Shown here: positions 1 to 20,271 of the stretch, piece by piece
Position numbering within the stretch: position 1 is the first letter of the stretch
Layout: every line of letters starts with the position of its first letter
Assembly: GCF_000006765.1 (NCBI RefSeq)
Contig: NC_002516.2
Reading direction: 5' to 3' (one strand)
Length of the DNA: 64,000 nt
Origin: Pseudomonas aeruginosa PAO1
GTDB lineage: Bacteria > Pseudomonadota > Gammaproteobacteria > Pseudomonadales > Pseudomonadaceae
Position numbers and translations under genes: made by a program
The notes under the pieces: model-generated
What the model was told of the DNA's origin: nothing
Databases searched by the model: none
The model's input: the letters and a program-made list of their open reading frames with translations, nothing else

Positions 1-985
1 CGCGCGGCGCCTGCCGACCTTCTCCGTGGACTTCCCCGGCGAAGGCCGCGGCTTCGTCCCGACGCCCTGGCAAAGCAGCTGGGACGAACCCTATGCGCAG
101 CTGGCGGCGAACTTCCTCGGTACGCCGCACCGTACCGTGCTGGTCGCCCCGGAAGAGGTGCTGGAACAGGACGAGGCGGTGCTCCAGGCCCGCGACCTGC
201 CCGGCTGGGGCGAGCTGGACGCCTCGCTCTACCTGCTGTTCCGCCAGGTCCGCGAGCACACCACGGTGGCACTGTCGGGCGAGTCGGCCGACGAGGTGTT
301 CGGCGGCTACCCGTTCTTCCACGACCCGAGCGCCCTCGCACACGACGGCTTCCCCTGGCTGGCCGGCAAGAGCGGGCCCTGGCAACTGCTGCGGCGGGAG
401 GTCGCCGAACGGGTGGCGGCGCCGGAATACATCCGGGCGCGCTACCGCGAGGCCCTCGCCGAAGTGCCGCGGCTGGATGGCGAGGATGCCGCCCAGCGAC
501 GCCAGCGCGAGGTCGCCTACCTGGCGCTGAGCCGCTGGCTGCCGGCGATGCTCGAACGCAAGGACCGGATGAGCATGGCGGTCGGCCTGGAAGTGCGCGT
601 GCCGTTCTGCGACCACCGCCTGGTGGAGTACGTATGGAACCTGCCCTGGGCGCTGAAGAGCGTCGCCGGGGAAAGCAAGAGCCTGCTGCGCCGGGCCCTG
701 CGCGGGCACCTGCCGCAGGCGATCCTGGAGCGGCGCAAGAGCGGTTTCCCGGCCAACCCCGACCCACGTTACCTGGCGCTGCTGCGCGAGCGGGTCGGCC
801 GCCTGCTCGACGACGGCCGCTCGCCGCTGTTCGAACTGGTGGACGCCGGGCGGGTCCGCCAGGCTCTCGAACAGGGCACGCCGCTGCCCAGCCCGCGTGC
901 CTCGGCGAGCCCGACCGCCGGCCTGGCCTACCTGCTGAACCTGGACCGCTGGCTGACCCGCCATGGGGTCGACATCAGCCTCTGA
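1..985 (+). CDS. Asparagine synthase (glutamine-hydrolysing)-like amidotransferase, C-terminal part (5' end outside window)
   Basis: Motifs LSGESADEVFGGY, KDRMSMAVGLEVRVPFCDH and RKSGFP of the AsnB synthetase domain; the ORF is open from the window edge. Confidence 0.9.
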   Translation, partial: ARRLPTFSVDFPGEGRGFVPTPWQSSWDEPYAQLAANFLGTPHRTVLVAPEEVLEQDEAVLQARDLPGWGELDASLYLLFRQVREHTTVALSGESADEVFGGYPFFHDPSALAHDGFPWLAGKSGPWQLLRREVAERVAAPEYIRARYREALAEVPRLDGEDAAQRRQREVAYLALSRWLPAMLERKDRMSMAVGLEVRVPFCDHRLVEYVWNLPWALKSVAGESKSLLRRALRGHLPQAILERRKSGFPANPDPRYLALLRERVGRLLDDGRSPLFELVDAGRVRQALEQGTPLPSPRASASPTAGLAYLLNLDRWLTRHGVDISL

Positions 986-1012
986 GCGGCACTTTCTTCC
1001 CGGAGGATACTC

Positions 1013-1522
1013 ATGAGCCTTGCCTTGTCCCGTCCCGACAGCGACCTGCTGGCGCGGGTCAGCGATTTCCTCGTCGCCGAAGCCGAGCTGCTCGACGACC
1101 GCCTGCTGGATACCTGGTTCGCGCTGTTCGAGCGCGCCGCACGCTACCGGGTGCTGCCCTTGCAGGAGCAACTGGCCGGCCAGGCGCCGGAGGACAGCCT
1201 GTACATCATCGACGACGACCACGTGCGCCTGCGCGAGCGGGTCGACAGCATCCTCGGCGGGCATACCTGGATGGAGCAGCCGCGCTCGCGCACCCGCCGC
1301 CTGGTGGGCAACGTGCGGCTGAAGCGGGTCGAGGGCGAACTGGTCAGCAGCCGCAGCAACTTCGTCGTCCATCAGTTCCGCAACCGCGAGGCCTGGAGCT
1401 TCGTCGGCGAAGCCAGTCATGTCCTGCGCGACGGCCCCGGGGGCTTGCGCATCGTCTCGCGGGAGATCCGCCTGGACCACGAGACCATCAGCGCCCAGCG
1501 GCGCATCAGCATCATCCTGTGA
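1013..1522 (+). CDS. Aromatic ring-hydroxylating (Rieske) dioxygenase beta subunit
   Basis: 169 aa; EAELLDDR..W, RLRERV, EQPRSRTRRLVGNV and C-terminal R-I-L pattern; GGAGG RBS. Confidence 0.88.
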   Translation: MSLALSRPDSDLLARVSDFLVAEAELLDDRLLDTWFALFERAARYRVLPLQEQLAGQAPEDSLYIIDDDHVRLRERVDSILGGHTWMEQPRSRTRRLVGNVRLKRVEGELVSSRSNFVVHQFRNREAWSFVGEASHVLRDGPGGLRIVSREIRLDHETISAQRRISIIL

Positions 1523-1532
1523 GGCGCCGCCC

Positions 1533-2435
1533 ATGAATACCGATCCGTTGCTGCCCGGCTTCGACTACCTGACCCTGCACACCTCCGCCGCGCGCCTCCG
1601 CGTCGCCGTGAAGGGCAGCGGCCCGCCGCTGCTGCTGTTGCATGGCTATCCGCAGACCCACCTGGCCTGGCATCGCATCGCTCCGCGCCTGGCCGAGGAC
1701 TACAGCGTGGTCCTCGCCGACCTGCGCGGCTATGGCGAATCGCGGGCGCTGGACGAGGAGGGCGCCGACTATTCCAAGGCCGCGCTGGCCCGCGACCAAC
1801 TGGAAACGATGGGCCAGCTAGGCTTCGAACGCTTCGCGGTGATCGGCCACGACCGCGGCGCGCGGGTCGGCTATCGCCTGGCGCTGGACCATCCGCAAGC
1901 GGTCGCGGCCTTCGTCTCGCTGACCGTGGTGCCGATCCTCGACAACTGGGCCGCGGTGAACAAGGTCTTCGCCCTCAACGCCTACCACTGGTTCCTCCTC
2001 GCCCAGCCGTACGACCTGCCGGAGCGCCTGATCGGCGCCGATCCGGAGCACTTCCTCGACTACACCCTGCGACGCATGGCCCAGGGCCGCGACATCTACC
2101 ACCCGCAGGCGCTGGAAAGTTACCGCCGGGCGTTCCGCGACCCCGCCGTGCGCCATGCGATGTGCGAGGACTACCGGGCCGCGGTGGGCGTCGATGCCGA
2201 CGCCGACCAGGCCGATCGCGACGCCGGCCGGCGCCTGCAATGCCCGGTCCAGGTGCTCTGGCAGGAGCGCCCCTACGCCGCCGGGCAGCATCCGCTGGAA
2301 ATCTGGAAGACCTGGGCCGGGCAGGTCGAGGGCGCCGCCATCGGCGCCAGCCACATGCTTCCCGAGGACGCGCCGGACGCCGTGCTGGAGCACCTGCTGG
2401 GGTTTCTCGCCAGCCACCGGGAGGCGCTCCGATGA
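1533..2435 (+). CDS. Alpha/beta hydrolase, haloacetate (fluoroacetate) dehalogenase / epoxide hydrolase family
   Basis: HGYPQTH oxyanion motif, GHDRGARV nucleophile elbow, YHWFLLAQP, EDYRA, catalytic His in SHMLPED; start chosen at MNTDPLL. Confidence 0.85.
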   Translation: MNTDPLLPGFDYLTLHTSAARLRVAVKGSGPPLLLLHGYPQTHLAWHRIAPRLAEDYSVVLADLRGYGESRALDEEGADYSKAALARDQLETMGQLGFERFAVIGHDRGARVGYRLALDHPQAVAAFVSLTVVPILDNWAAVNKVFALNAYHWFLLAQPYDLPERLIGADPEHFLDYTLRRMAQGRDIYHPQALESYRRAFRDPAVRHAMCEDYRAAVGVDADADQADRDAGRRLQCPVQVLWQERPYAAGQHPLEIWKTWAGQVEGAAIGASHMLPEDAPDAVLEHLLGFLASHREALR

Positions 2436-3088
2436 GCGCCGTCGAACGCGATCCGGCGGCGCAGGCGACGCTCTGGCGACAGCGGGTGTTCGAGGTGCAC
2501 GCGGCGATGTCCGCCTACGTCGCCGAGCGCCATCGGCGTGAAGACCTGGGGGACTGGGTGGCGACCAGCGCGCGGATATTCGCCGATCTGCCGGCGACCG
2601 ACGACCTGCGCGCCGAAGCCTGGCAGGCGGTGTTCTTCCGCGCCCAGGCGCTGATCGAACAGTTCATCGTCGCGCGCCCGGCGGATTACCGGCTCGACGA
2701 CTGGGCGCGCGCCACCGCGCGGATCTATCGCGCGCTGGAACCGGCGGGGCGGGGCGATCCGGCCAGCGCCGCCGACCGTCTGGCACGCCAGGCCGCGCTC
2801 TACGGTTCGCGTTTCGAGGTGCAGGCCGAGGCTGACGGGCGCGCGGTATTCCACAACCGTCACTGCGCGATCTGGGACTACCGCGAGCGCGCCCGCGCCC
2901 GAGGCGTGCCGATCACCCTGGAGTCGGCCTGCACCTATTGCACCAAGCTGCTGTCGGCGTTCGTCACCGCCAGCGATTGCCGCGCCGACTGGCGGCTCTA
3001 CGAAGAGCCGCAAGGCCACGGCTGCGTATGGACCATCACGGCGGACAGCCTCAACCAAGGAGCAGGCGTACATGAACGCGATCATTGA
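2432..3088 (+). CDS. Hypothetical protein with HC..C-x2-C motif (V4R / ATC-hydrolase-like fold suspected)
   Basis: ATGA overlap with the upstream gene, typical codon usage, 218 aa. Confidence 0.7.
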   Translation: MSAVERDPAAQATLWRQRVFEVHAAMSAYVAERHRREDLGDWVATSARIFADLPATDDLRAEAWQAVFFRAQALIEQFIVARPADYRLDDWARATARIYRALEPAGRGDPASAADRLARQAALYGSRFEVQAEADGRAVFHNRHCAIWDYRERARARGVPITLESACTYCTKLLSAFVTASDCRADWRLYEEPQGHGCVWTITADSLNQGAGVHERDH

Positions 3089-3920
3089 ACAGGCGCGCAG
3101 CCTGGACGGCTACCAGGATTCCAGCGAACTGCTGCAACGTCGCGACCAGGACTGGGTGCTCGACCGCGCCGGCATCGAGCCGCGCAGCCTGCTCGATCTC
3201 GGCTGCGGCATCGGCTCGCTGCTGCTCGGTGGCGCCCGGCGCTGGCCCGGCCTGCAACGGTTGTGGGGCATCGAACGTTCGCCGCTACGCCTGGAGCAGG
3301 CGCGCGCGCAGTTGCGCGGGGCTGGCGTCGAGGCGCGTCTGCTGGAGGGCGACCTGCTCGACCTGCCGCCGCTGGCGGAACGCTTCGAGCTGATCAGCAT
3401 GACCGCCGTGCTGCACTGGCTGTATCCCGATGAAGAGCGGCTGTTCCGGTGGGTCGCGCGGCACCTCGAGGCGCAGGGGGTATTCCTGTTCACCTCACAC
3501 CATCCGTTCGCCGAGGATGGCCTCGGCGGCGAGGACGACCTGGTCGCCCAGGCCCTGGTCGAGATGGGCCTGGCTGCGCCGGAACGGGTGGCGGCGCTCT
3601 ACGCGGAAGCCGGGCTGCTGCCGATGGGAACCCGCACCCGTGGCCGGGAGGCGTTGCGCGAACGCGTCGAACGACACTTCCGGGTCGACTCCATCGTCTC
3701 CCGCCCGGCGGTCCTGCGTGTCGCCGACTCCGCCGAATACCAGCGTTTCCACGCCGCCACCTTCGGCACCTATTTCGCACCGCTGGTGCCGGCGACGCGC
3801 CTGGAGGAATTCTTCGTCCGCCTCGGGCGGATCGCCGAGCGGCGCATGCAGGCCGACGGACAGGTCAGCGAAATCCCGGTCAGTGTCTGGCGCTGCCGGG
3901 CTCGGGAGGGCGAGGCATAA
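3072..3920 (+). CDS. Class I SAM-dependent methyltransferase
   Basis: Motif I LLDLGCGIG, EGDLLDL, TAVLHW. Confidence 0.88.
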   Translation: MNAIIEQARSLDGYQDSSELLQRRDQDWVLDRAGIEPRSLLDLGCGIGSLLLGGARRWPGLQRLWGIERSPLRLEQARAQLRGAGVEARLLEGDLLDLPPLAERFELISMTAVLHWLYPDEERLFRWVARHLEAQGVFLFTSHHPFAEDGLGGEDDLVAQALVEMGLAAPERVAALYAEAGLLPMGTRTRGREALRERVERHFRVDSIVSRPAVLRVADSAEYQRFHAATFGTYFAPLVPATRLEEFFVRLGRIAERRMQADGQVSEIPVSVWRCRAREGEA

Positions 3921-4011
3921 CCTTATGCGCAATCGGTCTGCCGCGCGGCTGAAAATCGGTACGGGCAATTGCACTCGGTGGCATCCGCAACCGATCAAGG
4001 ATGAACCGACC

Positions 4012-6663
4012 ATGTCCAACCCGCGTTCGCCACGTCTTCGACTTGTCCCCGTGCTCTGCGCGGTCGGCCTGGCCTGCCTTGGCCAGCCCGGCGAGTCGGC
4101 GGCAGAGGAGGTCCGCGCCACCAGCAGCGCCGAGATCCAGCGCTTCGACATCCCGGCCGGCGAACTGGCCCAGGTACTGCTGAGCATAGTCCGCCAGAGT
4201 CGCACCCCGATCGCCTTCGACCAGCACCTGGTGGAGGGCCTGCCGGCACCGGCGATCCAGGGCTCCTACAGCGTCGAGCAGGCGCTGCAGCGGGCCTTGC
4301 AGGGCAGCGGCCTGGAATACAGCCGCAGCGCCGCCGGCGTGCTCAGCCTGCAACGCGCCACGGCGCCGGATGCCGCGCTGCCGGCGGCGAAGCCCGCCGG
4401 GACCCTGGCCACGGTGGTGGTCACCGGCACCCGCAAGGCCGATGTCAAGGCCGGCGAGAGCCTGGCACCGATCGATGTGGTCAGCGCCGAGCAATTGCGC
4501 GACAGTGGTAGCGGCGACCTGCGCGACGCCCTGGTGCGCCTGCTGCCCTCGCTGTCGCGCCAGGCCCAGGCCTACAACGCTTCGGCGCTGACCAACGCGC
4601 AGTCGCTGCGCGGCCTGAGTCCCAACCACGTGCTGGTGCTGGTGAACGGCAAGCGCCGTCACGAGACCGCCAACATCAATGTCAGCGGCGGGCTGCAGAG
4701 CGGCTCCACCGGGGTCGACCTGGATACCATCCCGCTCGCCGCCATCGAGCGCATCGAGGTGCTGCGCGACGGCGCCTCGGCGCAGTACGGCTCGGACGCC
4801 ATCGCCGGGGTGATCAACGTCATCCTCAAGTCGGCCGACCACGGCGGCCGGCTCGCCTACGACAACGGTCGCTACGGCGATGGCGACGGCCTGACCCAGA
4901 ACGGCGGGGTGAATGGCGGCCTGCGTTTCGGCGAGAGCGGTTTCCTCAACCTCAGCGCGCAGTTCCGCGAACAGGCGCGGACCATCCGCGCCGGCATCGA
5001 CCAGCGTACCGGGCACTACGGCAACCCGTCCATCGGCGACCCTTCGCTGCACCGCCAGGCGCTGGCCTACAACGCCGGCGTGGCGCTGGACGACAACGTC
5101 GAGCTGTACAGCTTCGCCACCTATACCCATCGCTCGGTGTCCTCGGCGCAGATCTACCAGTTGCCGTCCCTGGCGCCGCGACTCTATCCGAACGGCTTCA
5201 CCCCGCGCATCACCAGCGACGAGGACGACTATTCGCTGACCCTCGGCGCCCGTGGCGGCGAGCTGTTCGGCGCCTGGGACTGGGACCTCAGTTCGACCTA
5301 CGGTGCCGACCGCCCGGAGATCGGCATGGACCATTCGATCAACCTCGCCCTCTACGGCGAGACCGGCGATTCGCCGCGCTCCTTCGACCTGGCGCGCTAC
5401 AAGGCCACCCAGTGGACCAACAATCTCGACCTGCGCCGCGACTTCGACCTCGCCTGGCTGCCGGCGCCGCTGAATTTCTCCTGGGGCCTGGAGCAGCGCC
5501 GCGAGCTCTACGAGGTCGAGGCCGGCGATCCTTGGTCCTACTACAACGGCGGTTCCAAGGCACTCCCCGGGCAGGCGCCGGCCACCGCCGGACAGTGGAG
5601 CCGCGACGTGCTCGGCGCCTATCTCGACCTGTCCATCGCCCTCGACGAGCGCTGGCAACTGGAGACGGCGGCGCGCTACGAGCACTACAGCGACTTCGGC
5701 AGCACCACCAACGGCAAGCTCGCCAGCCGCTACCGCTTCAGCCCCGAGGTATCGGCGCGGGCCAGTCTCAGCAGCGGCTTCCGCGCGCCGTCGCTGGCCC
5801 AGGAGAACTACACCAGCCTGGGCGTCTCGCCGACCATCGCCAGCGGCCTGCTGGCGGTCAACTCGCCGGCGGCCAGGCTGCTCGGCGCCGAAGACCTGGA
5901 GCCGGAAAAATCGATCAGCTACAACCTCGGCCTGGTGCTCGATCCCTTGCCGGACCTGAACCTGGCCATCGACGCCTATCGCATCGAGATCCGCGACCGC
6001 ATCGTCGACGGTGCCACCTATTCCGGACAGCCGGCGATCGATGCGCTGCGCGCCGGCGGGATCAGCATCCCGGCCGGACTGACCCAGGTCAGCACCCACT
6101 ACATGACCAACGGCGCCGACACCCGTACCCACGGCCTCGACCTCACCGCCAGCTACCTGACCCGGCTCGGCGAGTGGGGCCGGATCGACTGGCGCCTGGG
6201 CGCCAACGTCAATCGCACGAAGCTGGTCAGGAATCATCGCGGGCGCAACGGCCAGCCGCTGCTCAACGACCAGCAGCAGGCCTGGATCACCAGCTCCACG
6301 CCGCGCAGCCAGGTCAGCCTGCAGGCCGACTGGAGTTACCGGCGCTGGGGCCTGACCCTGCGCGAAACGCGCTACAGCAAGACGGTTTCCGAACTGGACT
6401 ACTACACCGGCGAGCATGCCTATTCGACCACGGTCTTCAACCGCTTCGAGAACTCGCCCAAGTACATCACCGACGTTGCCCTGCGCTATGCGGCGAGCCG
6501 CAACCTGACCCTGAGCGCCGGGGCCAACAATCTGTTCGACGTGAAGCCCGACAAGCTGCCGGCCGAGAGCGCCTACCTCGGCTTCAACCAGTACGACACC
6601 TATGCCTCGCAGATCAGCTTCAACGGCGCCTTCTACTACCTCGGCGCGGCCTACACCTTCTAA
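4012..6663 (+). CDS. TonB-dependent receptor/transducer with N-terminal signalling (STN) domain
   Basis: Signal peptide, FDIPAGEL STN domain, TonB box VVVTGTR, plug motif IERIEVLRDGASAQYGSDAIAGVINVI, C-terminal Phe. Confidence 0.93.
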   Translation: MSNPRSPRLRLVPVLCAVGLACLGQPGESAAEEVRATSSAEIQRFDIPAGELAQVLLSIVRQSRTPIAFDQHLVEGLPAPAIQGSYSVEQALQRALQGSGLEYSRSAAGVLSLQRATAPDAALPAAKPAGTLATVVVTGTRKADVKAGESLAPIDVVSAEQLRDSGSGDLRDALVRLLPSLSRQAQAYNASALTNAQSLRGLSPNHVLVLVNGKRRHETANINVSGGLQSGSTGVDLDTIPLAAIERIEVLRDGASAQYGSDAIAGVINVILKSADHGGRLAYDNGRYGDGDGLTQNGGVNGGLRFGESGFLNLSAQFREQARTIRAGIDQRTGHYGNPSIGDPSLHRQALAYNAGVALDDNVELYSFATYTHRSVSSAQIYQLPSLAPRLYPNGFTPRITSDEDDYSLTLGARGGELFGAWDWDLSSTYGADRPEIGMDHSINLALYGETGDSPRSFDLARYKATQWTNNLDLRRDFDLAWLPAPLNFSWGLEQRRELYEVEAGDPWSYYNGGSKALPGQAPATAGQWSRDVLGAYLDLSIALDERWQLETAARYEHYSDFGSTTNGKLASRYRFSPEVSARASLSSGFRAPSLAQENYTSLGVSPTIASGLLAVNSPAARLLGAEDLEPEKSISYNLGLVLDPLPDLNLAIDAYRIEIRDRIVDGATYSGQPAIDALRAGGISIPAGLTQVSTHYMTNGADTRTHGLDLTASYLTRLGEWGRIDWRLGANVNRTKLVRNHRGRNGQPLLNDQQQAWITSSTPRSQVSLQADWSYRRWGLTLRETRYSKTVSELDYYTGEHAYSTTVFNRFENSPKYITDVALRYAASRNLTLSAGANNLFDVKPDKLPAESAYLGFNQYDTYASQISFNGAFYYLGAAYTF

Positions 6664-6675
6664 GGAGGACGAACC

Positions 6676-7755
6676 ATGAGCATCGAACTGCGCGGCGGCG
6701 TGCGCGCCTCCGCAGTCATCGGCGACAGTGCCTTCGCCCGCCAGGCCGCGCGTTTCCTGCCGGACACCCGCAGTCGCGCGGTGAGCGCCTTCGACATCCA
6801 GCAGAAGGCCCGCCTGGAAGAGGCGGACGGCCTCGACGGCGCGCTGTTCACCGTTTCCGCTGCCTGGCCCGACCCCTGGCTGGTCGCCGGCTGGGCTTTG
6901 GCCGCGGCGCCGCGCCTGCGCGCCACCGTCGCGCACCGACCGGGGAGCGCCCAGCCGACCGTTGCCGCGCGCGCCCTGGCCACTCTCGACGGCCTGTCCA
7001 ACGGGCGCGCCGGCGTACACCTGGTGATCGGCTCCAGCGACGCCGACGTGCGCCGCGACGGCGACTTCGCCGACAAGGACGAACGCTACCGGCGCGCCGT
7101 GGAGTACCTGGAGGTCTTCACCCGCGCCCTGGAAAGCCGCGAACCCTTCGACTACCACGGCGAGTTCTACCGGCTGGAGGACGCCGGCAGCGGCTTCCTG
7201 CCGATCCAGCGGCCGCGCCCGCCGCTATCCGTTGGCGGCTCCTCGGCGCAGGCACAACGCCTGGCGGTGCGCTTCGCCGACGTCTACGCCGGCCACTTCG
7301 CCAGCCCCACGCAGACCGCGGAGCTCAAGCGCAGGCTGAACGAGGAGGCGGCGGAGCAGGGACGGCGGCTGAAGTTCTGGAAGCACTTCCAGGTGATCCT
7401 CGGCGACAGTCCGGCGGCGGCCCTGGACATCGCCGAGCACTACCGCCAGGCCGCTTTCGAACTGCTTCTGGCACGGCCCCTCGACGAACTGGCGGCATCG
7501 CCGCAGGTCGCCCGCGACGGCGAGCGCGACCGGCTCGCCCGGCTGGAGCCGGAGGCCTTGCGCGAATGGGTGGCGAATACCGTGCAGCGCAGCTTCGCCG
7601 GGGTGCTGGTGGGCAGCGTCGGCGAGGTGGCGGAACAGATCCTGGCCTTTCATCGCGCCGGCATCGAGATCGTCCAGCTTGAGGCCACCACCGAGAACGC
7701 CGAGGACATCCGCTTGCGCCGCCAACTGATCGAGCGCCTGAGGCGCGTCGCATGA
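6676..7755 (+). CDS. Luciferase-like flavin-dependent monooxygenase (SsuD/MsuD-like)
   Basis: HRPG, LATLDGLSNGR, ERYRRAVEYLEV, FDYHGEFY, GGSS and LVGS motifs. Confidence 0.85.
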   Translation: MSIELRGGVRASAVIGDSAFARQAARFLPDTRSRAVSAFDIQQKARLEEADGLDGALFTVSAAWPDPWLVAGWALAAAPRLRATVAHRPGSAQPTVAARALATLDGLSNGRAGVHLVIGSSDADVRRDGDFADKDERYRRAVEYLEVFTRALESREPFDYHGEFYRLEDAGSGFLPIQRPRPPLSVGGSSAQAQRLAVRFADVYAGHFASPTQTAELKRRLNEEAAEQGRRLKFWKHFQVILGDSPAAALDIAEHYRQAAFELLLARPLDELAASPQVARDGERDRLARLEPEALREWVANTVQRSFAGVLVGSVGEVAEQILAFHRAGIEIVQLEATTENAEDIRLRRQLIERLRRVA

Positions 7756-9035
7756 GCGGCGTCGCCCGCGAGGCCATGGAGGACGTCGCGCCGGCGGCGC
7801 CTGGCGTCGGCGAGTTCGGCGTGGCCAGTTGTGGGGTGCTGCTGGCCTCGGTAGTGGGGGTGATCTTCGGCCCCACCGGGCTGGTGATCAGCAGCTTCTC
7901 GCTGTTCATCGAGCCGATCGCTGCCGACCTGGACTGGGACCGCGGCCAGTCGGCGCTGCCGGTGACCCTGCTGGGCCTGGCGGTAGCCCTGAGCAGCCCG
8001 CTGAAGGGCTGGCTGGTGGATCGCTGGGGCGCGCGCGCCCTGGTCCTGCCGCTGACCGCCGCGCTGGCCCTGTGCCTGGCCAGCCTGGCGCTGGCGCGCA
8101 GCGGCTGGCAGCTATACCTGCTGTTCGCGCTGCTCGGCCTGCTGACGCCGGGCAACATTCCCTATGCGCGGATTCTCGGCGGCTGGTTCGAGCGTCGTCG
8201 CGGCGCGGCCTACGGCATCCTCGGACTCGGCTTCGGCGTCGGCGGGCCGCTGGCGCTGTACCTGGGCAGCGCCTGCATCGACGCCTTCGGCTGGCGCGCC
8301 ACCTTCCTCGTCTATGGCCTGCTCGAAGGCCTCCTGGCGCTGCCGCTGCTCTATGCGTTGTTCCGCGAGCGACCCGGCGACCTGCCGCAGGCGCGGCGCA
8401 CGCCAGCCGACGCGCTGCCCGGAGCGACGCCAGGCCAGGCCTGGCGCTCGGCGGACTTCTGGCTGATCGTCGGCAACCTGATCCTCGGCGTGTTCGCCGT
8501 CACTGGCGTGATGGTGCATGGCGTGCCGCTGTTGCAGGAGCGCGGCCTGTCGCGGGAAGTCGCCACCGACGTGCTGGCGGCGCTGTGGGTCGGCATGATC
8601 GTTTCGCAACCGGCGCTGGGCTACCTGCTGGACCGCTACGACACCCCGCGCATCGCCTTGCCGTTCGCCCTGCTGGCGGCGCTCGGGCTGCTGCTCCTGC
8701 TCCTTGGCGGACCGCCGGCGCTGCTCTGGGGCGCGGTGTTCCTGATCGGCCTGGGCGCCGGCGGCGAGACCGGCACCACCCAGTACTTCGTCAGCCGCTA
8801 CTTCGGCCTGCGCCATTTCAGCGTGATCTATGGCTCGATCCAGCCCTTCACCTTCGCCATCGCCATCAGCCTGGGGTCCTGGCTGCTGGGTTACTTCTAC
8901 GACCGCGCGGGCTCCTACGCGGGCTCGACGCTGGTCCTGCTCGGCGCGTTCGGCGTGGCGGCAGGGCTGCTGGTCATGCTCGGGCGCTATCGCTACGCCA
9001 TCGACGGGGAGGCACGCAGCCATGGGCGAGACTGA
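7752..9035 (+). CDS. MFS transporter
   Basis: About 12 hydrophobic segments; GWLVDRWGAR and GYLLDRYD motif A. Confidence 0.88.
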   Translation: MSGVAREAMEDVAPAAPGVGEFGVASCGVLLASVVGVIFGPTGLVISSFSLFIEPIAADLDWDRGQSALPVTLLGLAVALSSPLKGWLVDRWGARALVLPLTAALALCLASLALARSGWQLYLLFALLGLLTPGNIPYARILGGWFERRRGAAYGILGLGFGVGGPLALYLGSACIDAFGWRATFLVYGLLEGLLALPLLYALFRERPGDLPQARRTPADALPGATPGQAWRSADFWLIVGNLILGVFAVTGVMVHGVPLLQERGLSREVATDVLAALWVGMIVSQPALGYLLDRYDTPRIALPFALLAALGLLLLLLGGPPALLWGAVFLIGLGAGGETGTTQYFVSRYFGLRHFSVIYGSIQPFTFAIAISLGSWLLGYFYDRAGSYAGSTLVLLGAFGVAAGLLVMLGRYRYAIDGEARSHGRD

Positions 9036-10215
9036 ACGGAGCAGGGCGGAGGTCGGCGTCTGGCTGCTGGCCGGACTGGCCTTCGTGGTCGGCACGGTGG
9101 AACTGGTGGTGGCCGGGGTGCTCGACGAACTGGCCGCCAGTTTCGCCGTCAGCCAGGGCCGGGCCGGGTTGCTGATGAGCCTGTACGCGCTGGTCTATGC
9201 GCTGCTCGGCCCGCTGCTGGTCTACCTCAGCGCCGGTATCGAGCGCCGCCGCCTGCTGGCCGGCGCGCTGCTGGTGTTCGTCGGCGCCAACCTGGCCAGC
9301 GCCGCCGCGCCGAGCTTCGCCCTGTTGCTGGCGAGCCGGCTGCTGGTGGCGGCCAGCGCCTCGGTCATCGTGGTGGTGGCGATCACCCTGGCGGTGGCCA
9401 TTGTCGCGCCGGAACGGCGCGGCCGGGCGATCGGTCTGGTGTTCGCCGGCATCGTCGCCTCGCTGGTGCTGGGCGTACCGCTGGGCACCCTGATCGGCGA
9501 GTTCTGGGGCTGGCGTAGCCTGTTCCTGCTGCTCGCCGGGGTCGCGTTGCTCGGCCTGCCGCTGCTCCTGCGCCTGCTGCCGGCCATCCCCGGCGCGCCC
9601 GGCATCGCCCCGGCGGAGCAACTGCGGGCGCTGGCCCGGGGCCGGGTGCCGTTCGCCCACCTGGCATCGCTGTTGCAGATGACCGGCCAGTTCACCGTCT
9701 ACACCTACATCGTGCCGTTCCTGGTCGGCAGCATGGCCCTCGACAAACCGACCATCAGCCTGGTCCTGCTGGTCTACGGGGGCGGCGGCATCCTCGGCGC
9801 GCTGCTCGGCGGACGCGCCGCCGACCGCTGGCCGGGGCCGGCCACCTTCGTCGCCTTCCTGCTCCTGCACGCACTGGCCCTGGTCCTGCTGCCGTTCGCC
9901 ACCGGCGGCCTGCCGCTGCTGCTGGGCGCGGTGGTGTTCTGGTGCGTGTTCAACATGGCGCCGGGGCCGGCGATCCAGAAATACCTGGTGGAACTCAGCC
10001 CGGACACCGCGGCGATCCAGATCAGCCTCAACACCAGCGCGATCCAGCTCGGCGTGGCCCTGGGCGCCTTCATCGGCGCGATCCTGGTGGACCAGGTGGC
10101 GGTGCGCGCGCTCCCCTGGTGGGGCGCCGCGCTGATCCTCGGCGCCGCCGCCTGCGGCTGGCTGTCCGCGCAGCGGCCGGCGGGCACGGCGGACTGCCGG
10201 GAGCGCCTCGATTGA
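9022..10215 (+). CDS. MFS transporter (DHA1/NepI-like efflux)
   Basis: Hydrophobic segments, ERRGRAIG, LGVPLGT, WRSLF; start at MGETERS. Confidence 0.88.
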   Translation: MGETERSRAEVGVWLLAGLAFVVGTVELVVAGVLDELAASFAVSQGRAGLLMSLYALVYALLGPLLVYLSAGIERRRLLAGALLVFVGANLASAAAPSFALLLASRLLVAASASVIVVVAITLAVAIVAPERRGRAIGLVFAGIVASLVLGVPLGTLIGEFWGWRSLFLLLAGVALLGLPLLLRLLPAIPGAPGIAPAEQLRALARGRVPFAHLASLLQMTGQFTVYTYIVPFLVGSMALDKPTISLVLLVYGGGGILGALLGGRAADRWPGPATFVAFLLLHALALVLLPFATGGLPLLLGAVVFWCVFNMAPGPAIQKYLVELSPDTAAIQISLNTSAIQLGVALGAFIGAILVDQVAVRALPWWGAALILGAAACGWLSAQRPAGTADCRERLD

Positions 10216-10317
10216 TTCCCTACCGCGCGTCACGGGAACAGCCCCGGGCGCCGTTCCTCAACCTCCAGGCTCACTACCGCTATCCGTGGCGTGGCCTGCC
10301 AGCAGCGAACGCTTACC

Positions 10318-10827
10318 ATGGATAGCCAAGGCTCCATCAAGAACACCCTGATCGCCCAGTTGTTCCAGCAGAACTACGACTGGCTGTGCAAGAAGCTGTC
10401 CTACCAGACCGGCTGTAGCCACAGCGCCGAAGACCTCGCCGCCGAGGCCTTCCTGCAGGTCTGGATGCTCCCCGACCCGGCGTCGATCCGCTCGCCGCGG
10501 GCGTTCCTCGCGACCATCGCGCAACGCCTGATGTACGAGAGCTGGCGGCGCAAGGACCTGGAGCGCGCCTACCTGCAGATCCTCGCCGAGGCTCCGGAGG
10601 CGGTGCAGCCGTCGCCTCACGAGCAGTGGATGCTGATCGAGAGCCTGCAAGCCATCGACCGCCTGCTCGACGGCCTGTCCGGGCAGGCCAGGGCAGTGTT
10701 CCTGATGAGCCAGCTGGAAGGCCTGACCTACGTGCAGATCGGCGAACGCCTCGGATTGTCCCTGGGGCGCATCCACCAGTTGATGAAGGATGCCTTGCAC
10801 TGCTGCTACCGGGGATTCCAGGAATGA
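10318..10827 (+). CDS. ECF sigma-70 factor, FecI type
   Basis: AEDLAAEAF, PRAFLATIA, region 4 FLMSQLEGLTY. Confidence 0.92.
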   Translation: MDSQGSIKNTLIAQLFQQNYDWLCKKLSYQTGCSHSAEDLAAEAFLQVWMLPDPASIRSPRAFLATIAQRLMYESWRRKDLERAYLQILAEAPEAVQPSPHEQWMLIESLQAIDRLLDGLSGQARAVFLMSQLEGLTYVQIGERLGLSLGRIHQLMKDALHCCYRGFQE

Positions 10828-11780
10828 GCGAGAAGCCGGAACGGCAACGCATCGTCGAGGAGGCCATCGAATGGATGGTGCGCCTGCAATCCGGCGACTT
10901 CAGCGCCGCCGAGGGCGATGCCCTGGAACGCTGGAAGGCGCTGTCGAGCGAGCATGCCGAGGTGTTCCGGCAACTGCTTGGCAGCCTCGCGCCGCTACAG
11001 GACTCGCCCTGGCGCGGCCAGCCGAGCGCTACCGTGCTGCGCGCCCTGGAGCAGCCGTCGAGCCGCCGGCGCTTCGTCGGCGGCGCCCTCGGGCTGTTCG
11101 TCCTGCTCGCCGGCGGCGCCGGCCTGGAGCGCTGGGTCCAGGCCGGCATGGGTCTGCCCGGCGAACTGGCGACAGGCACCGGCGAGCGCCGCGACTGGTT
11201 GCTGGCCGACGGCAGCCGCCTGCGCCTGAACGCGCGGAGCAAGGTGCGACCGCTGCTCGACGGCGCCCAGCGACGCCTGGAGCTGCGGCGCGGCGCGATG
11301 CGCCTGGAAGTGAAGGAGGACCCGCGCGGCGCCTTCGCCCTCGACTGCGCCGCCGGACGGGTGGACTGCGCCAGCGGCAGCCTGCTGCTGGCCGAGGAGC
11401 GCGGGGCGATCCGCCTGGTGACCCTGCGCGGCAGCGCGCGGCTGACCACCGGTGAGGGACGCCAGCTGGCGGTGGCGGCACGACGTAGCCTGCTGTTCGA
11501 TGCCGGCGGCCTGCTCGAACAGGGCCCGATGCAGGCCGGAGAGGATGCCTGGGCCAGCGGCTGGCTGGAGGTCCACGACCGCTCCCTGGCCTGGGTCGCG
11601 GAGGCCTTCCGGCCCTATCTGCCAGGCATCCTCCAGCTCGACGCGGAGATCGCCGGCAACCGCGTCAGCGGTCTGTTCCCGCTGGACGACATGCACACGT
11701 CCCTGGACATGCTCGGACGCAGCCTGCCGATCCGCGTGCTGCGCTACAGCGACTACTGGATCAGCCTGCGCCCCGCCTGA
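10824..11780 (+). CDS. FecR-family anti-sigma / transmembrane sensor
   Basis: EAIEWMVRL, TGTGERR..LADGSRLRLNARS, W..GWL, RVSGLF; ATGA overlap with the sigma gene. Confidence 0.92.
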   Translation: MSEKPERQRIVEEAIEWMVRLQSGDFSAAEGDALERWKALSSEHAEVFRQLLGSLAPLQDSPWRGQPSATVLRALEQPSSRRRFVGGALGLFVLLAGGAGLERWVQAGMGLPGELATGTGERRDWLLADGSRLRLNARSKVRPLLDGAQRRLELRRGAMRLEVKEDPRGAFALDCAAGRVDCASGSLLLAEERGAIRLVTLRGSARLTTGEGRQLAVAARRSLLFDAGGLLEQGPMQAGEDAWASGWLEVHDRSLAWVAEAFRPYLPGILQLDAEIAGNRVSGLFPLDDMHTSLDMLGRSLPIRVLRYSDYWISLRPA

Positions 11781-11781
11781 C

Positions 11782-12627
11782 TCATTCGTCGAAGAACAGC
11801 AGGCAACGCAGTTCGATACTCTGCCGCGGCGGCGCATCGGCCGGGGTGCAGGGATCGTCGAAGGCGGTGTGCGCGCCGAGGCGGGCCTGCGCGTCCTCCC
11901 GCGAATCGTAGATCTTCAGCAGCAGCGCTTCCTCCGGCAGCAGGTGCGGGTAGTAGTACCAGCGGTGCTCCGGGTTGGGCTTGACCGAGTAGGTTTCGCC
12001 CACCTTGTCACGGTACACCAGGTCACTGGCCACCAGGTCGTCGAACGCCAGGCTGCGGGCGTCCAGCAACGCCAGCGGCGCGCGCTGCGCCGGGTGGCCG
12101 AACGGACGCCACAGGTTGACGATCTGGAAGCGTCCGGCCAGGCGCCGTTCGGCGCGTTCCGCCGGCAGGTGGTCGCGGACCCGGCGCGGCGCCGAGCGCA
12201 GGGTCTGGTCGTTGTGCACGTAGCGCACCGGTTCGCGCAGGCCGCGTTCTTCGCGCCCGGCCTGGTCGACGCGCAGCGTGTGGTCGAAGATCACCGCCTC
12301 GGCGGCGCCGGTCAGGCGGCGGAGCAGGGCGATGCTTTCCGGGTAGTAGCGTTCACGAACCTGGGCTTCATCCTCGAAATCGCCCACCGCGCTCGCCTCG
12401 CGCACCAGTTGGAAACCCTCGCGCTCCAGGCTGGCCGGTTGCGCCAGCAGACGCGCATTGCGGATCGCCACCCGGGTCGGCTGCAACAGCGCGCTGCGCT
12501 GCGGCGTCCCGGCAGGGGCCGGATAGGTGTAGGCGACCGGCCGTTGGCCGTTGTCGCGGATATAGTTGACCTCGGCCTCGACCTGCTCCGGCGCGTGCGC
12601 CGGCCATGCGTGTTGCTGGCAACCCAT
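11782..12627 (-). CDS. CmcJ/NvfI-family putative Fe(II)/2-oxoglutarate oxidoreductase
   Basis: FDHTLR, HND (HxD), VNLWRP, AHTAF and RQSIELR motifs. Confidence 0.7.
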   Translation of the reverse strand: MGCQQHAWPAHAPEQVEAEVNYIRDNGQRPVAYTYPAPAGTPQRSALLQPTRVAIRNARLLAQPASLEREGFQLVREASAVGDFEDEAQVRERYYPESIALLRRLTGAAEAVIFDHTLRVDQAGREERGLREPVRYVHNDQTLRSAPRRVRDHLPAERAERRLAGRFQIVNLWRPFGHPAQRAPLALLDARSLAFDDLVASDLVYRDKVGETYSVKPNPEHRWYYYPHLLPEEALLLKIYDSREDAQARLGAHTAFDDPCTPADAPPRQSIELRCLLFFDE

Positions 12628-12775
12628 GTGTCGTTCTCCCGTTGCCAGCGGAGATGCCTCCGCTGCCGCGCCGCCGGATGCCGCGCGTGAACGGCCAATC
12701 TAGCCGCTGGCAGGCGGCGGCGAAACGAACATCGAGCGCTGGCGTCCTGCCTTCGTGGAATAAGCCCGGAGCGGC

Positions 12776-13810
12776 TCAGGACATCGCGTCGAGTCGTCGC
12801 CGCTGGCGATACTGGCGCGGCGTCATGCCTTTCCAGCGCCTGAAGGCATGGCTGAAGTTGGACACCTCGCCGTAGCCGAGGCGCTCGGCGATCTCCTCCA
12901 GGCGAATCGCGCCGGTGGCCAGCAGCTCTTCGGCGAGGGCCTGGCGCACCTCGTCGAGCAACAGGCGGTAGCTGCTGCCCTCGTCGTCCAGGCGGCGACG
13001 CAGGGTACGCACGGTGAGGTGCAGTTCCATGGCCAGGGTCTGCATGTCCGGCAAGTGGCCGGGCGTCCTCAGCAAGCGGTCGCGGATGCGTCCGGCCAGA
13101 CCGCCGCGCACCTGGCGGCGGGCGAGCAGGGCGCGGCACTGCTCCTCGCAGGCGCGCGCCACCTCTGGATTGGCGCCGGGCAGCGGGAGGTCGAGGAAGC
13201 GCCGTTCGAAGACCACCCGGTTGTCCGCCTGGCCGAACGCCGGGCACAGGCCCAGCTCGCGCACGTAGGGCGCGGGATCGGCGGGCGGTGGGCGGCGGAA
13301 GCCGGCGCGGAGGATCGGCAGGCGCTGCCCGGTGAGGTCGCGCTGGATGCGCAGCACGCCACCGGCGTCGCGTTCGAGGAGGAAAATCCGCAGGTCCTCG
13401 GGAATGCCGGCGTCGTCGAGCACCAGGTGCGCTTCATCGTCGTGTACCTCCAGGCGGATGCCATGGAAGGCGAAGGTCAGGTCGAGGTAGCGCAGGCCCA
13501 GTTGCGCGGCGCTGAGGAAGGTCGGGCTGCTGAGCAGGGCGAAGCCCCAGATGCCGTAGGCGTTGAGGTGATAGCGCAGGCCTGCCGCCAGGCCCGGCGC
13601 GCAGGCGTCGCCCAGGTGCCGGACCAGGTTGCGCACTACGCTCAGTTCCTGGGCCGCGTCGATTTCCCCGGAGGGATCGCCGAGCAGGCGGATATCCAGG
13701 CCGCTACCTGCCAGGCACTGCTCCAGGCCGAGGCCGCGGTCGATGCCGAACTGGATCAGCAGGTGCGCGCTGATGGCGCTGCGGCGGGGAGACCAGGGCG
13801 GAGTGGGCAT
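12776..13810 (-). CDS. AraC-family regulator (arabinose-binding-like N-domain, OruR/VqsM type)
   Basis: YGIWGFALLSSPT N-domain; C-terminal double HTH LTVRTLRRRL / LGYGEVSNFSHAFRRW. Confidence 0.92.
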   Translation of the reverse strand: MPTPPWSPRRSAISAHLLIQFGIDRGLGLEQCLAGSGLDIRLLGDPSGEIDAAQELSVVRNLVRHLGDACAPGLAAGLRYHLNAYGIWGFALLSSPTFLSAAQLGLRYLDLTFAFHGIRLEVHDDEAHLVLDDAGIPEDLRIFLLERDAGGVLRIQRDLTGQRLPILRAGFRRPPPADPAPYVRELGLCPAFGQADNRVVFERRFLDLPLPGANPEVARACEEQCRALLARRQVRGGLAGRIRDRLLRTPGHLPDMQTLAMELHLTVRTLRRRLDDEGSSYRLLLDEVRQALAEELLATGAIRLEEIAERLGYGEVSNFSHAFRRWKGMTPRQYRQRRRLDAMS

Positions 13811-17332: not shown

Positions 17333-18766
17333 TCAAGCACGCATCGTCAGCATCTCTTGGGGGCCTTCGCGTAGGAGCGCTGCCAGGACTGCGAAGCCGT
17401 CAGATAACGTATTCCCCCCTCCTGGGGAATTGCTGACGCTGATTCGAATGGCCTGGGGAAGCGTACCGCGGCCCGTACTAAAGGCCTCTGCGGTGGTGAC
17501 AAGATGCTGCTGTCCGCGCATGCCTTGCTCTATTTCGATGGCGCGCCAGGGGGCTGGCACTTCTACCCAGAAATGCGGACAGCATAGATGGCTGCGATAG
17601 GTCAGGCCCTGCAGCAGGTCCACAACCAGCGCTTGGCGACGCGCGATTTCCCCTCTCTGGTATTCGAGCAGTGCGCTTGCAGTACCGTCCTCGACCCATC
17701 GGCTCGCAATCTCGAGAACCAGTGGTGTCGCCATCCAGCACGAATTGCGAAGCGCTGCTGCCATGCGACTTACCATGGATGCAGGAGCATGAACGTATCC
17801 AACCCGCAATCCTGCAGCGACCGCCTTGCTCATGCCACCGATGAGGATGCCCCGCTCAGGCAGCAGATGGCAGAGAGGGGTGGGGCGTTCGGCCATCAAT
17901 ACAGCATGGGTTTCGTCCTCGATGACGATCAAGCCGTGCTCGCGGCAGATCTTCGCGATTTCCTTCCGCCTGGCGCCTGACATCACTGCAGTGGTCGGGT
18001 TCTGGATGGTGGGTGTGCAGTACAGGGCGGTGATCCTGTTCGTGCGGCAGGCCTCTTCGAGGGCGTCGGGCAGTAGCCCCTCTTCATCCATTTCCAAGCC
18101 GAGCACCTTGATGCCCAACAGTTGCGCGGCACTGATCAGCCCAGGATAGGAGAGCTGCTCCGTTACCAGGGTGTCGCCGGCGCGCAGCATGGCCATAAGC
18201 ACGACGAGCAGACCGTGTTGGCTGCCATTGACGCACAGAATCTGCTGGTGCTCCGCTTGAAACTCACCGTGAGACAGCCATGTTGCTCCCGCTTGCCGGT
18301 GTCGGAGCAGTCCTGTGTCGGGTGTGTAGAGCATTAACTCCTGCAGGAGCTCAGGGGCCGCACTCAATTGCTGAAGGCTGCGGGAAAGCAGTTCGGTCTC
18401 ATTGCCCGGAATATGCATATTCCGGCTCATGTCGTTGCACATCTCGGTGCTGTCTACGAAATTGCGAAAGCCCGCCTCCCGAGCACGTTCTCGACCGCGG
18501 TTGCGGACGAACGTACCGTCGCCGACCCGAGCCTCAACCAGCCCCATGCGCTCCAGCTCACCATAGGCCCGGCTCACCGTGCCCGCGGTCACACCGAGCT
18601 TGTCCGCGAGGATGCGATGTGGCGGCAGCTTGACTCCCTGCCGGAGAACCCCATTGCGAATAGATTCTTCGATGCCCTGGGCCAGCCGTTTGTACTTCAG
18701 GCCGGGCCCTTCTGGTAGGAAGAATCTGAAAATTGAATCGGTGTCAATATTTGCTTTGACCGGCAT
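17333..18766 (-). CDS. MocR/GabR-family regulator (GntR wHTH + PLP aminotransferase-like domain)
   Basis: KLPPHRILADKLGVTAGTVSRAYGEL HTH; EQLSYPG, IEDE, SKAVAAGLRVG. Confidence 0.92.
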   Translation of the reverse strand: MPVKANIDTDSIFRFFLPEGPGLKYKRLAQGIEESIRNGVLRQGVKLPPHRILADKLGVTAGTVSRAYGELERMGLVEARVGDGTFVRNRGRERAREAGFRNFVDSTEMCNDMSRNMHIPGNETELLSRSLQQLSAAPELLQELMLYTPDTGLLRHRQAGATWLSHGEFQAEHQQILCVNGSQHGLLVVLMAMLRAGDTLVTEQLSYPGLISAAQLLGIKVLGLEMDEEGLLPDALEEACRTNRITALYCTPTIQNPTTAVMSGARRKEIAKICREHGLIVIEDETHAVLMAERPTPLCHLLPERGILIGGMSKAVAAGLRVGYVHAPASMVSRMAAALRNSCWMATPLVLEIASRWVEDGTASALLEYQRGEIARRQALVVDLLQGLTYRSHLCCPHFWVEVPAPWRAIEIEQGMRGQQHLVTTAEAFSTGRGTLPQAIRISVSNSPGGGNTLSDGFAVLAALLREGPQEMLTMRA

Positions 18767-18799
18767 ATTTTCTCCGAATTAACCTCAAATAAAGAGGTT
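18732..18799. promoter_or_regulatory. Two inverted repeats in the divergent mocR/eamA control region (candidate operators)
   Basis: ATTGA-N7-TCAAT at 18732-18748 and AACCTC-N7-GAGGTT at 18781-18799, within an AT-rich tract. Confidence 0.45.
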
Positions 18800-18847
18800 T
18801 GATAAGCAATAAAGGGCGTCAATCAAAGAATAACATGGGGGAAAGAC

Positions 18848-19789
18848 GTGCAACTTATGTCAATTCAAGCTCTGACTATCAACAGGCGGCAGGTACGTGT
18901 GGCCAGCCTGGTGACCGCTGTTCTATTTCTAGTGGTGTGTATCAGCTGGGGGACTACCTGGCTCGGCATCAAGATCGCCGTGGAGAGCGTGCCGCCGCTA
19001 ACTGCCGCCGGATTGCGCTTTCTGATCGCATTTCCGCTTTTCCTGCTCTTTGCGCGGCTGCGCCACGAGACGATCTTTTTCCCGCGGCGACTCCTGGCCT
19101 TCTTCGTCTTCGTGACGCTCGGCTACTTCAGCGTGCCCTACTACCTGCTGAACTATGGCGAGCAATACGTCGCTTCAGGTCTTACCGCGCTGCTGTTCAG
19201 CAGCATGCCCGTGTTCATCCTGATCTTCTCCGCGATCTTCCTGCGCGAGCGCATCTACCTGTCGCAGATCCTTGGTATTGCGATTGGCTTCGGCAGCCTG
19301 TTCATGATCATCAGGTCTCAAGGGCTGCATCTGGACTACACGGAGTTGTTAGGCGTACTTGCCATCCTGCTCGCGGCGATCATGCACGCACTCAGCTACG
19401 TCATCACCAAAAGGCAAGGTGCTGACATCGGCGTGATCACCTTCAATACGCTGCCCATTGGCATCGCCGGCTTGGGGCTGTTCATGGCCGGACTCGTGAT
19501 GGAACACCCGAACCTGTCTGCCGTCACAAGCCGATCTTGGGCTGCCCTGATCTATCTCGGTCTGGTGGCATCAGTCGGGGGATTCATCGTGTACTTCTTC
19601 CTGCTCAAGCGTTTGAGTCCCGTTGTGCTGTCGTTTGTCTTCATCATTTTCCCGGTGTTCGCCGTGATCATCGGCGCCTGGTACGAAGGGGTTGCCATCT
19701 CTCGCGAGTTGATTGGCTTCACCGTGCTCCTATTGGCTGGATTTGCCATCACCAAGCTTCCCATCGAGAAGCTGCTCGGCAGGAGGTGA
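18848..19789 (+). CDS. EamA/DMT-family exporter
   Basis: 10 TM segments; WGTTWLGIK, LNYGEQYVASGL, FPVFAVIIG; alternative start 18857. Confidence 0.88.
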   Translation: MQLMSIQALTINRRQVRVASLVTAVLFLVVCISWGTTWLGIKIAVESVPPLTAAGLRFLIAFPLFLLFARLRHETIFFPRRLLAFFVFVTLGYFSVPYYLLNYGEQYVASGLTALLFSSMPVFILIFSAIFLRERIYLSQILGIAIGFGSLFMIIRSQGLHLDYTELLGVLAILLAAIMHALSYVITKRQGADIGVITFNTLPIGIAGLGLFMAGLVMEHPNLSAVTSRSWAALIYLGLVASVGGFIVYFFLLKRLSPVVLSFVFIIFPVFAVIIGAWYEGVAISRELIGFTVLLLAGFAITKLPIEKLLGRR

Positions 19790-19790
19790 C

Positions 19791-20249: not shown

Positions 20250-20271
20250 ACATCTGGCAAGGAGCTGAAAA

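Follow-up and report, generated by a model that had tools for sequence, protein, structure and literature searches.

The window, by which we mean the whole 64-kb stretch of Pseudomonas aeruginosa DNA that was analysed, carries in its first 12 kb a tightly packed row of plus-strand genes (~70% G+C), among them those for a TonB-dependent transducer and an adjacent luciferase-like flavin monooxygenase (LLM). This locus is probably a sulfur-starvation-induced system for the acquisition of organosulfur compounds under cell-surface signalling control. Its regulation by sulfur starvation is established, and the main inference of an earlier note made from the sequence alone is in that respect already known from the literature; import and desulfurisation of an organosulfur ligand by the receptor and the LLM are plausible. 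In the mechanism that we propose, sulfur limitation would raise the expression of a FecI-type sigma factor and a FecR-type anti-sigma factor. The sigma factor, probably with a dimeric activator on the palindrome CATAACCTTATG, would fire a GCTGAAAA-N11-AATTGCACTC promoter before two operons, namely receptor-LLM-MFS-MFS (MFS, major facilitator superfamily transporter) and a paralogous PA2590-MFS pair. The transducer would carry a bulky or scarce organosulfur compound over the outer membrane and signal its occupancy to the anti-sigma factor, and a lactate/oxalate-type MFS would bring the compound into the cytoplasm. There the LLM would oxidise it with reduced flavin mononucleotide (FMNH2), the reductase being encoded elsewhere, and free usable sulfur, while the carbon skeleton, now free of sulfur, may leave through the efflux-type MFS. 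The receptor and the LLM would be made in bulk, purged of Cys and Met so that their synthesis would cost almost no sulfur.

The nearest database matches of the window proteins were from P. aeruginosa at 99-100% identity, and the receptor matched, at 100% identity, a cluster of 2600 P. aeruginosa proteins. By species, gene order and domains we identify the locus as PA2083-PA2094 and treat the window genes as PA2084-PA2094. A 2025 study of strain PAO1 compared a sulfur-free medium, from which sulfate, Cys and Met were absent, with the same medium containing 500 uM sulfate, a positive log2 fold change meaning higher expression in starvation. The RNA of PA2083-PA2094 rose by log2 fold changes of ~3.0-3.6, about 8-12-fold (PA2085 3.18, PA2086 3.27, PA2089 3.02, PA2090 3.64, PA2091 3.44, PA2093 3.28 and PA2094 3.20), and the PA2083-PA2093 proteins rose by log2 1.2-4.0. 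In the same study pvdD, pchR and related iron genes (pvd, pch) went down, and antioxidant genes were co-induced. A 2019 paper reported PA2093 as induced by sulfate limitation, credited this to Tralau et al. 2007, and recorded that PA2083-PA2094 had earlier been named the 'extracellular sulfate locus' and PA2090 a 'putative sulphonatase'.

Automatic annotation ('iron complex outer membrane receptor', FecI-like sigma factor) implies something else, namely ordinary iron or siderophore cell-surface signalling. The FecIRA architecture is indeed complete, with an STN signalling domain ahead of the plug of the receptor (PF07660, E=5.9e-11, residues 67-115) and FecI-type sigma and FecR-type anti-sigma factors encoded together; many homologues bear iron-receptor names, and PA2093 was taken as the 'iron-related' extracytoplasmic function (ECF) reference in a published paper. 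The Fur/iron control of FecIRA systems, however, was not found. No Fur box was detected, the best intergenic match to the Fur consensus being 10/19, below chance matches within coding sequence. The receptor scored 79.7 bits against the siderophore-receptor model TIGR01783, short of the cutoff of 223.5, and reached no curated family of TonB-dependent receptors (TBDRs). Moreover, sulfur starvation raises the expression of the locus and lowers that of the pyoverdine and pyochelin genes. We therefore consider iron signalling highly improbable, and correct the 'iron receptor / FecI' label that PA2089-PA2094 carry by default. The earlier note had proposed a sulfur-starvation system responding to sulfur rather than iron and had staked the idea on induction by sulfate starvation; such induction is present in the published PAO1 data at the RNA and protein levels, with the iron genes moving in the opposite direction. 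Amino-acid composition read from raw sequence alone can thus flag a sulfur-starvation regulon, as the call agrees with transcriptome and proteome data that its reader had not seen.

To assess sulfur content, the proteins were translated directly. The two Cys of the receptor (Cys16 and Cys22) lie within the hydrophobic core of its predicted N-terminal signal peptide (MSNPRSPRLRLVPVLCAVGLACLGQPGESAA|EE); it has three Met including the initiator, which leaves no Cys and two Met in the ~853 residues of the mature part. The LLM has no Cys and the initiator Met only (0/358 residues otherwise), and the Rieske beta subunit, of 169 aa, has no Cys and one internal Met. These counts reproduce all those given in the earlier note. 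Comparison levels came from E. coli control proteins and from 41 genes elsewhere in the window that are supported by third-position G+C (GC3), with 13,469 residues (Cys 1.04%, internal Met 1.43%, sum 2.46%), and a binomial test was applied. The receptor had 4 Cys+Met where 21.7 were expected (0.45% versus 2.46%; P=3.4e-6) and the LLM none where 8.8 were expected (0%; P=1.3e-4). The beta subunit had 1 against an expected 4.1, which alone is not significant (P=0.08). Among the other genes of the cluster, Cys+Met was 1.25% in the Asn-synthase-like protein (depletion not significant), 2.0% in the hydrolase, 2.1% in the methyltransferase, 2.75% in a 218-aa Cys-rich protein, 1.6-1.8% in the two MFS and 2.5% in the anti-sigma factor; the ECF sigma factor was sulfur-rich at 6.2%. 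Since these neighbours are of ordinary sulfur content, the 'extreme sulfur-sparing' described in the note is limited to the two adjacent genes for the receptor and the LLM, and extends neither to the beta subunit nor to the rest of the locus. These two proteins are presumably its most abundant products and are a particularly clean example of sulfur-sparing proteins. The underlying principle, depletion of Cys and Met in proteins made under sulfur limitation, is established in the literature, where it has been reviewed and applied. Elsewhere in the window, a GC3-supported open reading frame of 174 aa (57906-58430, minus strand) encodes no Cys and no internal Met, and has one predicted hydrophobic segment and no Pfam match.

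Sulfur-poor composition could also be a mere property of these families or of their compartment (beta-barrels, TIM-barrel LLMs), devoid of functional meaning. An OprD-family porin encoded in the same window (29554-30783, minus strand) has no Cys and one internal Met (0.24%), which shows that outer-membrane barrels can be sulfur-poor even where nothing evident ties them to a sulfur regulon. Close relatives of both proteins were sulfur-poor throughout. The 114 closest receptor relatives (51-100% identity) had a median Cys+Met of 0.48%, with no Cys in the mature part in 106 of them, and all 120 of the closest LLM homologues, from Actinobacteria and Alpha-, Beta- and Gammaproteobacteria and at identities down to 35%, had at most 1.3%, mostly 0-0.6%. 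The earlier note had held that a sulfur content typical of the families would speak against its idea; low sulfur is formally typical of the close families, whereas distant LLM clades are normal. The idea is not refuted by this, because the close families themselves sit in sulfur-scavenging clusters and because of those distant clades. In a wider LLM set from an exhaustive representative search, Cys+Met was bimodal (0-0.8% versus 2-4.7%). Sulfur content was strongly clustered on the LLM tree, as the observed number of changes was lower than in any of 500 shuffles. The window LLM fell in a clade with 99% support, 33 of whose 37 sequences are sulfur-poor; true SsuD lies outside it, and so does a clade of 13 proteins that all have normal sulfur content. 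Since whole clades have normal sulfur, the LLM fold is not intrinsically sulfur-poor. Outer-membrane controls also differed, with 1.7-2.0% in the E. coli iron receptors FhuA, FecA and FepA and 1.72% in a fimbrial usher of the window (49862-52480), or four to eight times as much as here. The usher belongs to a region (48520-54541) that had been considered from its gene sizes as a second ECF/anti-sigma/TBDR set; this was rejected, as it is a CupA-like chaperone-usher cluster (Usher, PapC_N, PapC_C), and it served solely as the outer-membrane control. Cytoplasmic enzymes, ABC permeases and binding proteins encoded beside the relatives are also below 1%, and the published induction of the locus contradicts a composition devoid of functional meaning. 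We regard that explanation as very improbable.

The gene row has two gaps, one of 91 nt between the methyltransferase and receptor genes and one of 102 nt between the second MFS gene and the sigma factor gene. In the first, the palindrome overlaps the methyltransferase stop codon and ends exactly 20 nt upstream of the -35 element. The same upstream architecture, with identical spacing, was found at five TBDR genes from three Pseudomonas species (the window receptor gene, that of Pseudomonas sp. LRF_L74, two in P. synxantha, and PA2590), in the order CATAA(SS)TTATG palindrome, 20 nt, GCTGAAAA, ~11 nt and AATTGCACTC. The palindrome and the promoter motif each occur once in the window. The full composite occurred 11 times in the 92 metagenome stretches returned by the scan, in every case at a PA2089-type or PA2590-type promoter. 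The -35 sequence GAAAAT of the receptor promoter resembles the GGAAAAT of E. coli PfecA. From this conservation we infer an ECF promoter common to both receptor operons, together with a predicted site for a second dimeric regulator. The second gap holds a 33-nt element that is partly conserved in P. synxantha and is not a Fur box; a sigma-54 promoter at this element was considered and rejected, as the GG-N10-GC spacing is not kept in LRF_L74 (judged by eye). A scan of positions 1-12800 for sigma-70 promoters and terminators gave nothing useful.

To place the locus in context, related clusters were compared. A scan of genome contigs returned a single close locus, in Pseudomonas sp. LRF_L74, and the P. 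synxantha and Methylosinus loci were obtained by exact-protein look-up. LRF_L74 (L001) has the whole cluster, including a Rieske alpha subunit ahead of a full 609-aa Asn-synthase-like orthologue, and the cluster adjoins a sigma-54 activator, four further LLM genes and SurE (L001 14232-20457). In P. synxantha the cluster is followed directly by a second pair of STN-receptor and MFS genes. P. aeruginosa has this second pair elsewhere, beside a GerE/LuxR-family regulator; by Pfam domains its surroundings comprise an AraC-family regulator, an FAD monooxygenase, a GerE-type response regulator and uvrC. We take these neighbours to be vqsR, pqsH and gacA, and the pair to be PA2590/PA2589. The receptor and MFS of the second pair are 64% and 61% identical to the window copies. 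The Methylosinus locus reads MFS1-MFS2-TBDR-TBDR-LLM-nitroreductase-amidase, with 54% identity to the window for MFS1, 58% for MFS2, 40% for the receptor and 58% for the LLM. Since Methylosinus retains MFS1, MFS2, TBDR and LLM, these four genes form the conserved core of the system; its nitroreductase-family gene could be the flavin reductase. Copies of MFS1 (54-61% identity) also come after a TBDR gene in loci L020, L022 and L017. In Kitasatospora the LLM gene comes after those for an Opp-type ABC importer and another LLM, and all proteins of the operon, permeases included, have 0-0.9% Cys+Met. On Collimonas-like and Paraburkholderia contigs, receptor relatives that have no signalling domain are surrounded by three to five LLM genes and by genes for SsuA/NMT1-type binding proteins and acyl-CoA-dehydrogenase-like proteins; almost all of these neighbours have less than 1% Cys+Met. 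The receptor and LLM families thus repeatedly belong to sulfur-poor uptake clusters, also in other phyla. A Collimonas-like contig also encodes an 848-aa TonB receptor with no Cys and no internal Met (L023 13664-16210).

Several points weigh against the acquisition system as we propose it, and the first of them concern the LLM. Its luciferase-like TIM-barrel domain (PF00296) spans residues 39-330, and its nearest PDB entries are MsuD (7jv3) and SsuD (1m41), at E~1e-36. It scored 152.1 bits against the SsuD model TIGR03565 (cutoff 518.2), 153.4 against the SsuD model NF001939 (cutoff 510) and 96 against the SfnG model (cutoff 383), and so reached none of them. The active-site and sulfonate-binding residues of SsuD are, in E. 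coli numbering, H11, C54, W196, R226, H228, R297, Y331 and H333. These positions were checked on the E. coli sequence and aligned by L-INS-i, and pairwise HMMER alignment agreed. The LLM has A for H11, W64 for C54, H207 for W196, H237 for R226, Q239 for H228, Q304 for R297, T338 for Y331 and E340 for H333. Six or seven of the 8 residues differ, as R297 is possibly kept as the adjacent loop residue R305, and C54, W196, R226, H228, Y331 and H333 are all missing. An outright loss of R297, indicated by a gap in a fast MAFFT alignment of 190 LLMs, was dropped, since HMMER and L-INS-i show the adjacent Arg305. True SsuD-like representatives (P0329, P0342 and P0359) each have 7/8 signature residues, and all keep the six that are missing here. 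The Trp at the C54 position is constant in the immediate clade of the LLM (the closest ~70 homologues, to about 45% identity). The 'SsuD-like enzyme' of the earlier note is therefore no true SsuD; on sequence grounds the protein is best described as a member of an uncharacterised LLM clade of the sulfur-starvation response. Because the sulfonate-binding residues of SsuD are absent, its substrate would not be a simple alkanesulfonate bound in the SsuD manner.

This absence fits a detoxification or oxidative-stress module. Its LLM and Rieske/hydrolase enzymes would have as substrate a xenobiotic without sulfur or a metabolite damaged by peroxide, and their induction would accompany that of the antioxidant response. 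Antioxidant genes are indeed co-induced by sulfur starvation, and STRING labels the cluster 'xylene/chlorobenzene degradation'. The extreme sulfur sparing of the receptor and the LLM points instead to sulfur acquisition, as does the recurrence of the two families beside SsuA-type binding proteins, dehydrogenases like SfnB/DszC and further uptake proteins that are poor in sulfur. We consider detoxification improbable.

The remaining points against organosulfur acquisition concern the signal, the upstream genes and the evidence itself. The operon is induced in a medium without any organosulfur compound, which strictly ligand-gated signalling would not predict. Neither flavin reductase nor ABC transporter genes were found within 1-11780 by Pfam and NCBIfam scans, which leaves the cluster without a flavin reductase. 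The upstream enzymes (Asn-synthase-like, methyltransferase, Rieske oxygenase and hydrolase), which the Methylosinus module lacks, are not depleted of sulfur and by their looks could belong to biosynthesis as readily as to catabolism. For an outer-membrane barrel a low sulfur content by itself says little, given the composition of the porin. The PA numbers were assigned by species, gene order and domains, compared with the annotations in a published PAO1 table, and not by alignment to the PAO1 record. In the literature consulted for the locus no demonstration of a substrate, of sulfite release or of ligand-dependent signalling was found, and these are plausible elements of the proposed system.

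The induction without an external ligand, about 8-12-fold for the receptor operon, would be expected if the ligand were self-made. Under sulfur starvation PA2083-PA2088 would then make a small metabolite for secretion, with the efflux-type MFS as its exporter. The receptor, the importer MFS and the LLM would recover and process this metabolite, and the receptor would signal its presence, as happens for pyoverdine via FpvA-FpvR. One MFS is of an efflux (DHA1/Cmx/MxcK-like) type, the upstream proteins (Rieske oxygenase, Asn-synthase-like amidotransferase, hydrolase, Cys4 protein and methyltransferase) are of kinds common in biosynthetic clusters, and the combination of biosynthesis genes, exporter, TBDR and ECF pair is the layout of a siderophore locus. 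However, the Methylosinus core has both MFS, the TBDR and the LLM without any PA2083-88 gene, and TBDR relatives without signalling domains lie in plainly catabolic sulfur clusters. Raised sigma factor expression alone could also explain induction without a ligand. A self-made ligand is therefore unlikely. We hold a more specific version to be similarly doubtful, in which the locus would do for sulfur what a siderophore system does for iron. Under sulfur starvation the PA2083-88 product would be exported by the efflux-type MFS, then sensed and re-imported, maybe sulfur-loaded, via two sulfur-free TonB transducers on one ECF sigma factor, and the LLM of the uncharacterised clade would strip the sulfur by non-SsuD chemistry. 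A weaker version would make the locus the first case of cell-surface signalling shown to respond to an organosulfur nutrient, a second activator acting at the conserved palindrome.

The features of the locus are collected in Table 1. Domains were assigned with Pfam, and family membership was tested with NCBIfam/TIGR models and their curated cutoffs.

Table 1. Genes and candidate regulatory elements of the locus, in window coordinates.
Feature	Position	Strand	Basis
Asparagine-synthase-like amidotransferase, 3' part, PA2084-like, cut by window start	1..985	+	PF00733 E=4.5e-83
Ring-hydroxylating dioxygenase beta (small) subunit, Rieske type, PA2085-like, 169 aa	1013..1522	+	PF00866 E=4.6e-43
Alpha/beta-fold hydrolase (epoxide hydrolase / haloalkane dehalogenase-like), PA2086-like	1533..2435	+	PF00561 E=4.9e-25
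218-aa protein, rare family, PA2087-like	2432..3088	+	no Pfam match
S-adenosylmethionine (SAM)-dependent methyltransferase, PA2088-like	3072..3920	+	PF13649 E=1.2e-14
Candidate activator site, perfect 12-bp palindrome CATAACCTTATG	3916..3927	.	conserved sequence and spacing
Candidate ECF (FecI-type) promoter GCTGAAAA-N11-AATTGCACTC	3948..3976	+	conserved at five TBDR promoters
TonB-dependent transducer (STN + plug + barrel), PA2089/OptL-like, 883 aa	4012..6663	+	PF07660, PF07715, PF00593
Luciferase-like (LLM) flavin monooxygenase, PA2090-like, 359 aa	6676..7755	+	PF00296 E=1.4e-47
MFS transporter 1 (oxalate/formate- and lactate-type), PA2091-like	7752..9035	+	PF07690; NF049980 113.8 bits
MFS transporter 2 (DHA1 / efflux-type), PA2092-like	9022..10215	+	PF07690; best NCBIfam = sugar-efflux, Cmx-type
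33-nt element 5' of sigma factor gene	10266..10298	+	identical in Pseudomonas sp. LRF_L74
FecI-type ECF sigma factor, PA2093-like	10318..10827	+	NF009177 334.8 bits (cutoff 266)
FecR-type anti-sigma factor, PA2094-like	10824..11780	+	PF16220, PF04773

MFS transporter 1 is the probable inner-membrane importer. For the sigma factor, the ATG at 10318 was favoured over a GTG at 10291, as the NF009177 match begins at residue 11 of the long form, and this start is kept in LRF_L74; the sigma and anti-sigma genes overlap by 4 nt. In some P. aeruginosa genomes the methyltransferase domains and the receptor are annotated as one protein of 1196 aa (P0121, P0122), which suggests that in those strains an indel or an annotation fusion spans the 3920-4012 gap.

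The 218-aa protein belongs to a family whose members occur in Pseudomonas and actinomycetes, and a Pfam match was found in 0/23 of them. The family alignment shows invariant H144, C145, C167, C170 and C198 (H-C...C-x-x-C...C), and the protein probably holds a metal site. Its AlphaFold2 model (pLDDT 88.7) gave H-NOX domains as the best Foldseek matches (E~7e-4, TM~0.4), so that the predicted fold weakly resembles H-NOX/V4R/Bet3-like proteins. The name L-ATC hydrolase, which some databases give to this family, was not reproduced, as 0/23 members match the Pfam model at E<=1. Further along the window, a low-GC island (17333-24134; 57-58% GC versus about 70%) encodes a MocR-type regulator, an EamA transporter, a ThiS-ThiF-rhodanese fusion, a cysteine-synthase-like PALP enzyme, a hexapeptide acetyltransferase and an AlaX-like protein. 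With 4.5-5.7% Cys+Met these proteins are rich in sulfur, the EamA transporter (2.2%) excepted, and the island looks like a sulfur-carrier (thiocarboxylate) pathway.

The locus can be compared with four kinds of known system. With FecIRA and FpvA-FpvR-FpvI it shares an STN transducer, a FecR-type anti-sigma factor, a FecI-type sigma factor and a PfecA-like GAAAAT -35 element. In contrast to these, it has no Fur box and is regulated by sulfur in place of iron; the PA2089 and PA2590 receptors would, judging from their promoters, depend on one sigma/anti-sigma pair, and an extra conserved palindrome lies at about -60. The SsuD, MsuD and SfnG systems (ssuEADCBF, msuEDC, sfnG) use monooxygenases of the same LLM TIM-barrel family and are likewise sulfur-starvation-induced and sulfur-poor (Cys+Met of 1.05% in E. 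coli SsuD, 0.94% in SsuA and 0% in SsuE). The window LLM differs from SsuD and MsuD in falling in a separate, well-supported clade below the family cutoffs, and its gene has no adjacent flavin reductase or ABC transporter gene, uptake being predicted to proceed via the TonB receptor and MFS instead. SftP, a Pseudomonas TonB receptor, reportedly functions in sulfate-ester use, according to work of the Kertesz laboratory. It is encoded in the sulfate-ester cluster atsACBR-sftR-atsK-sftP and resembles the window receptor in being a sulfur-regulated TonB receptor for organosulfur uptake instead of iron. However, the partners of SftP are a sulfatase/dioxygenase and a LysR regulator, whereas the window receptor has an STN domain and is linked with an LLM and with an ECF sigma/anti-sigma pair. 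Five P. aeruginosa sulfate-starvation islands, with products of reduced Cys and Met content, were reportedly described by Tralau and colleagues in 2007. Like the low-sulfur sulfate-starvation-induced (SSI) proteins, the receptor and the LLM combine Cys/Met depletion with induction, and in principle they do not differ from them.

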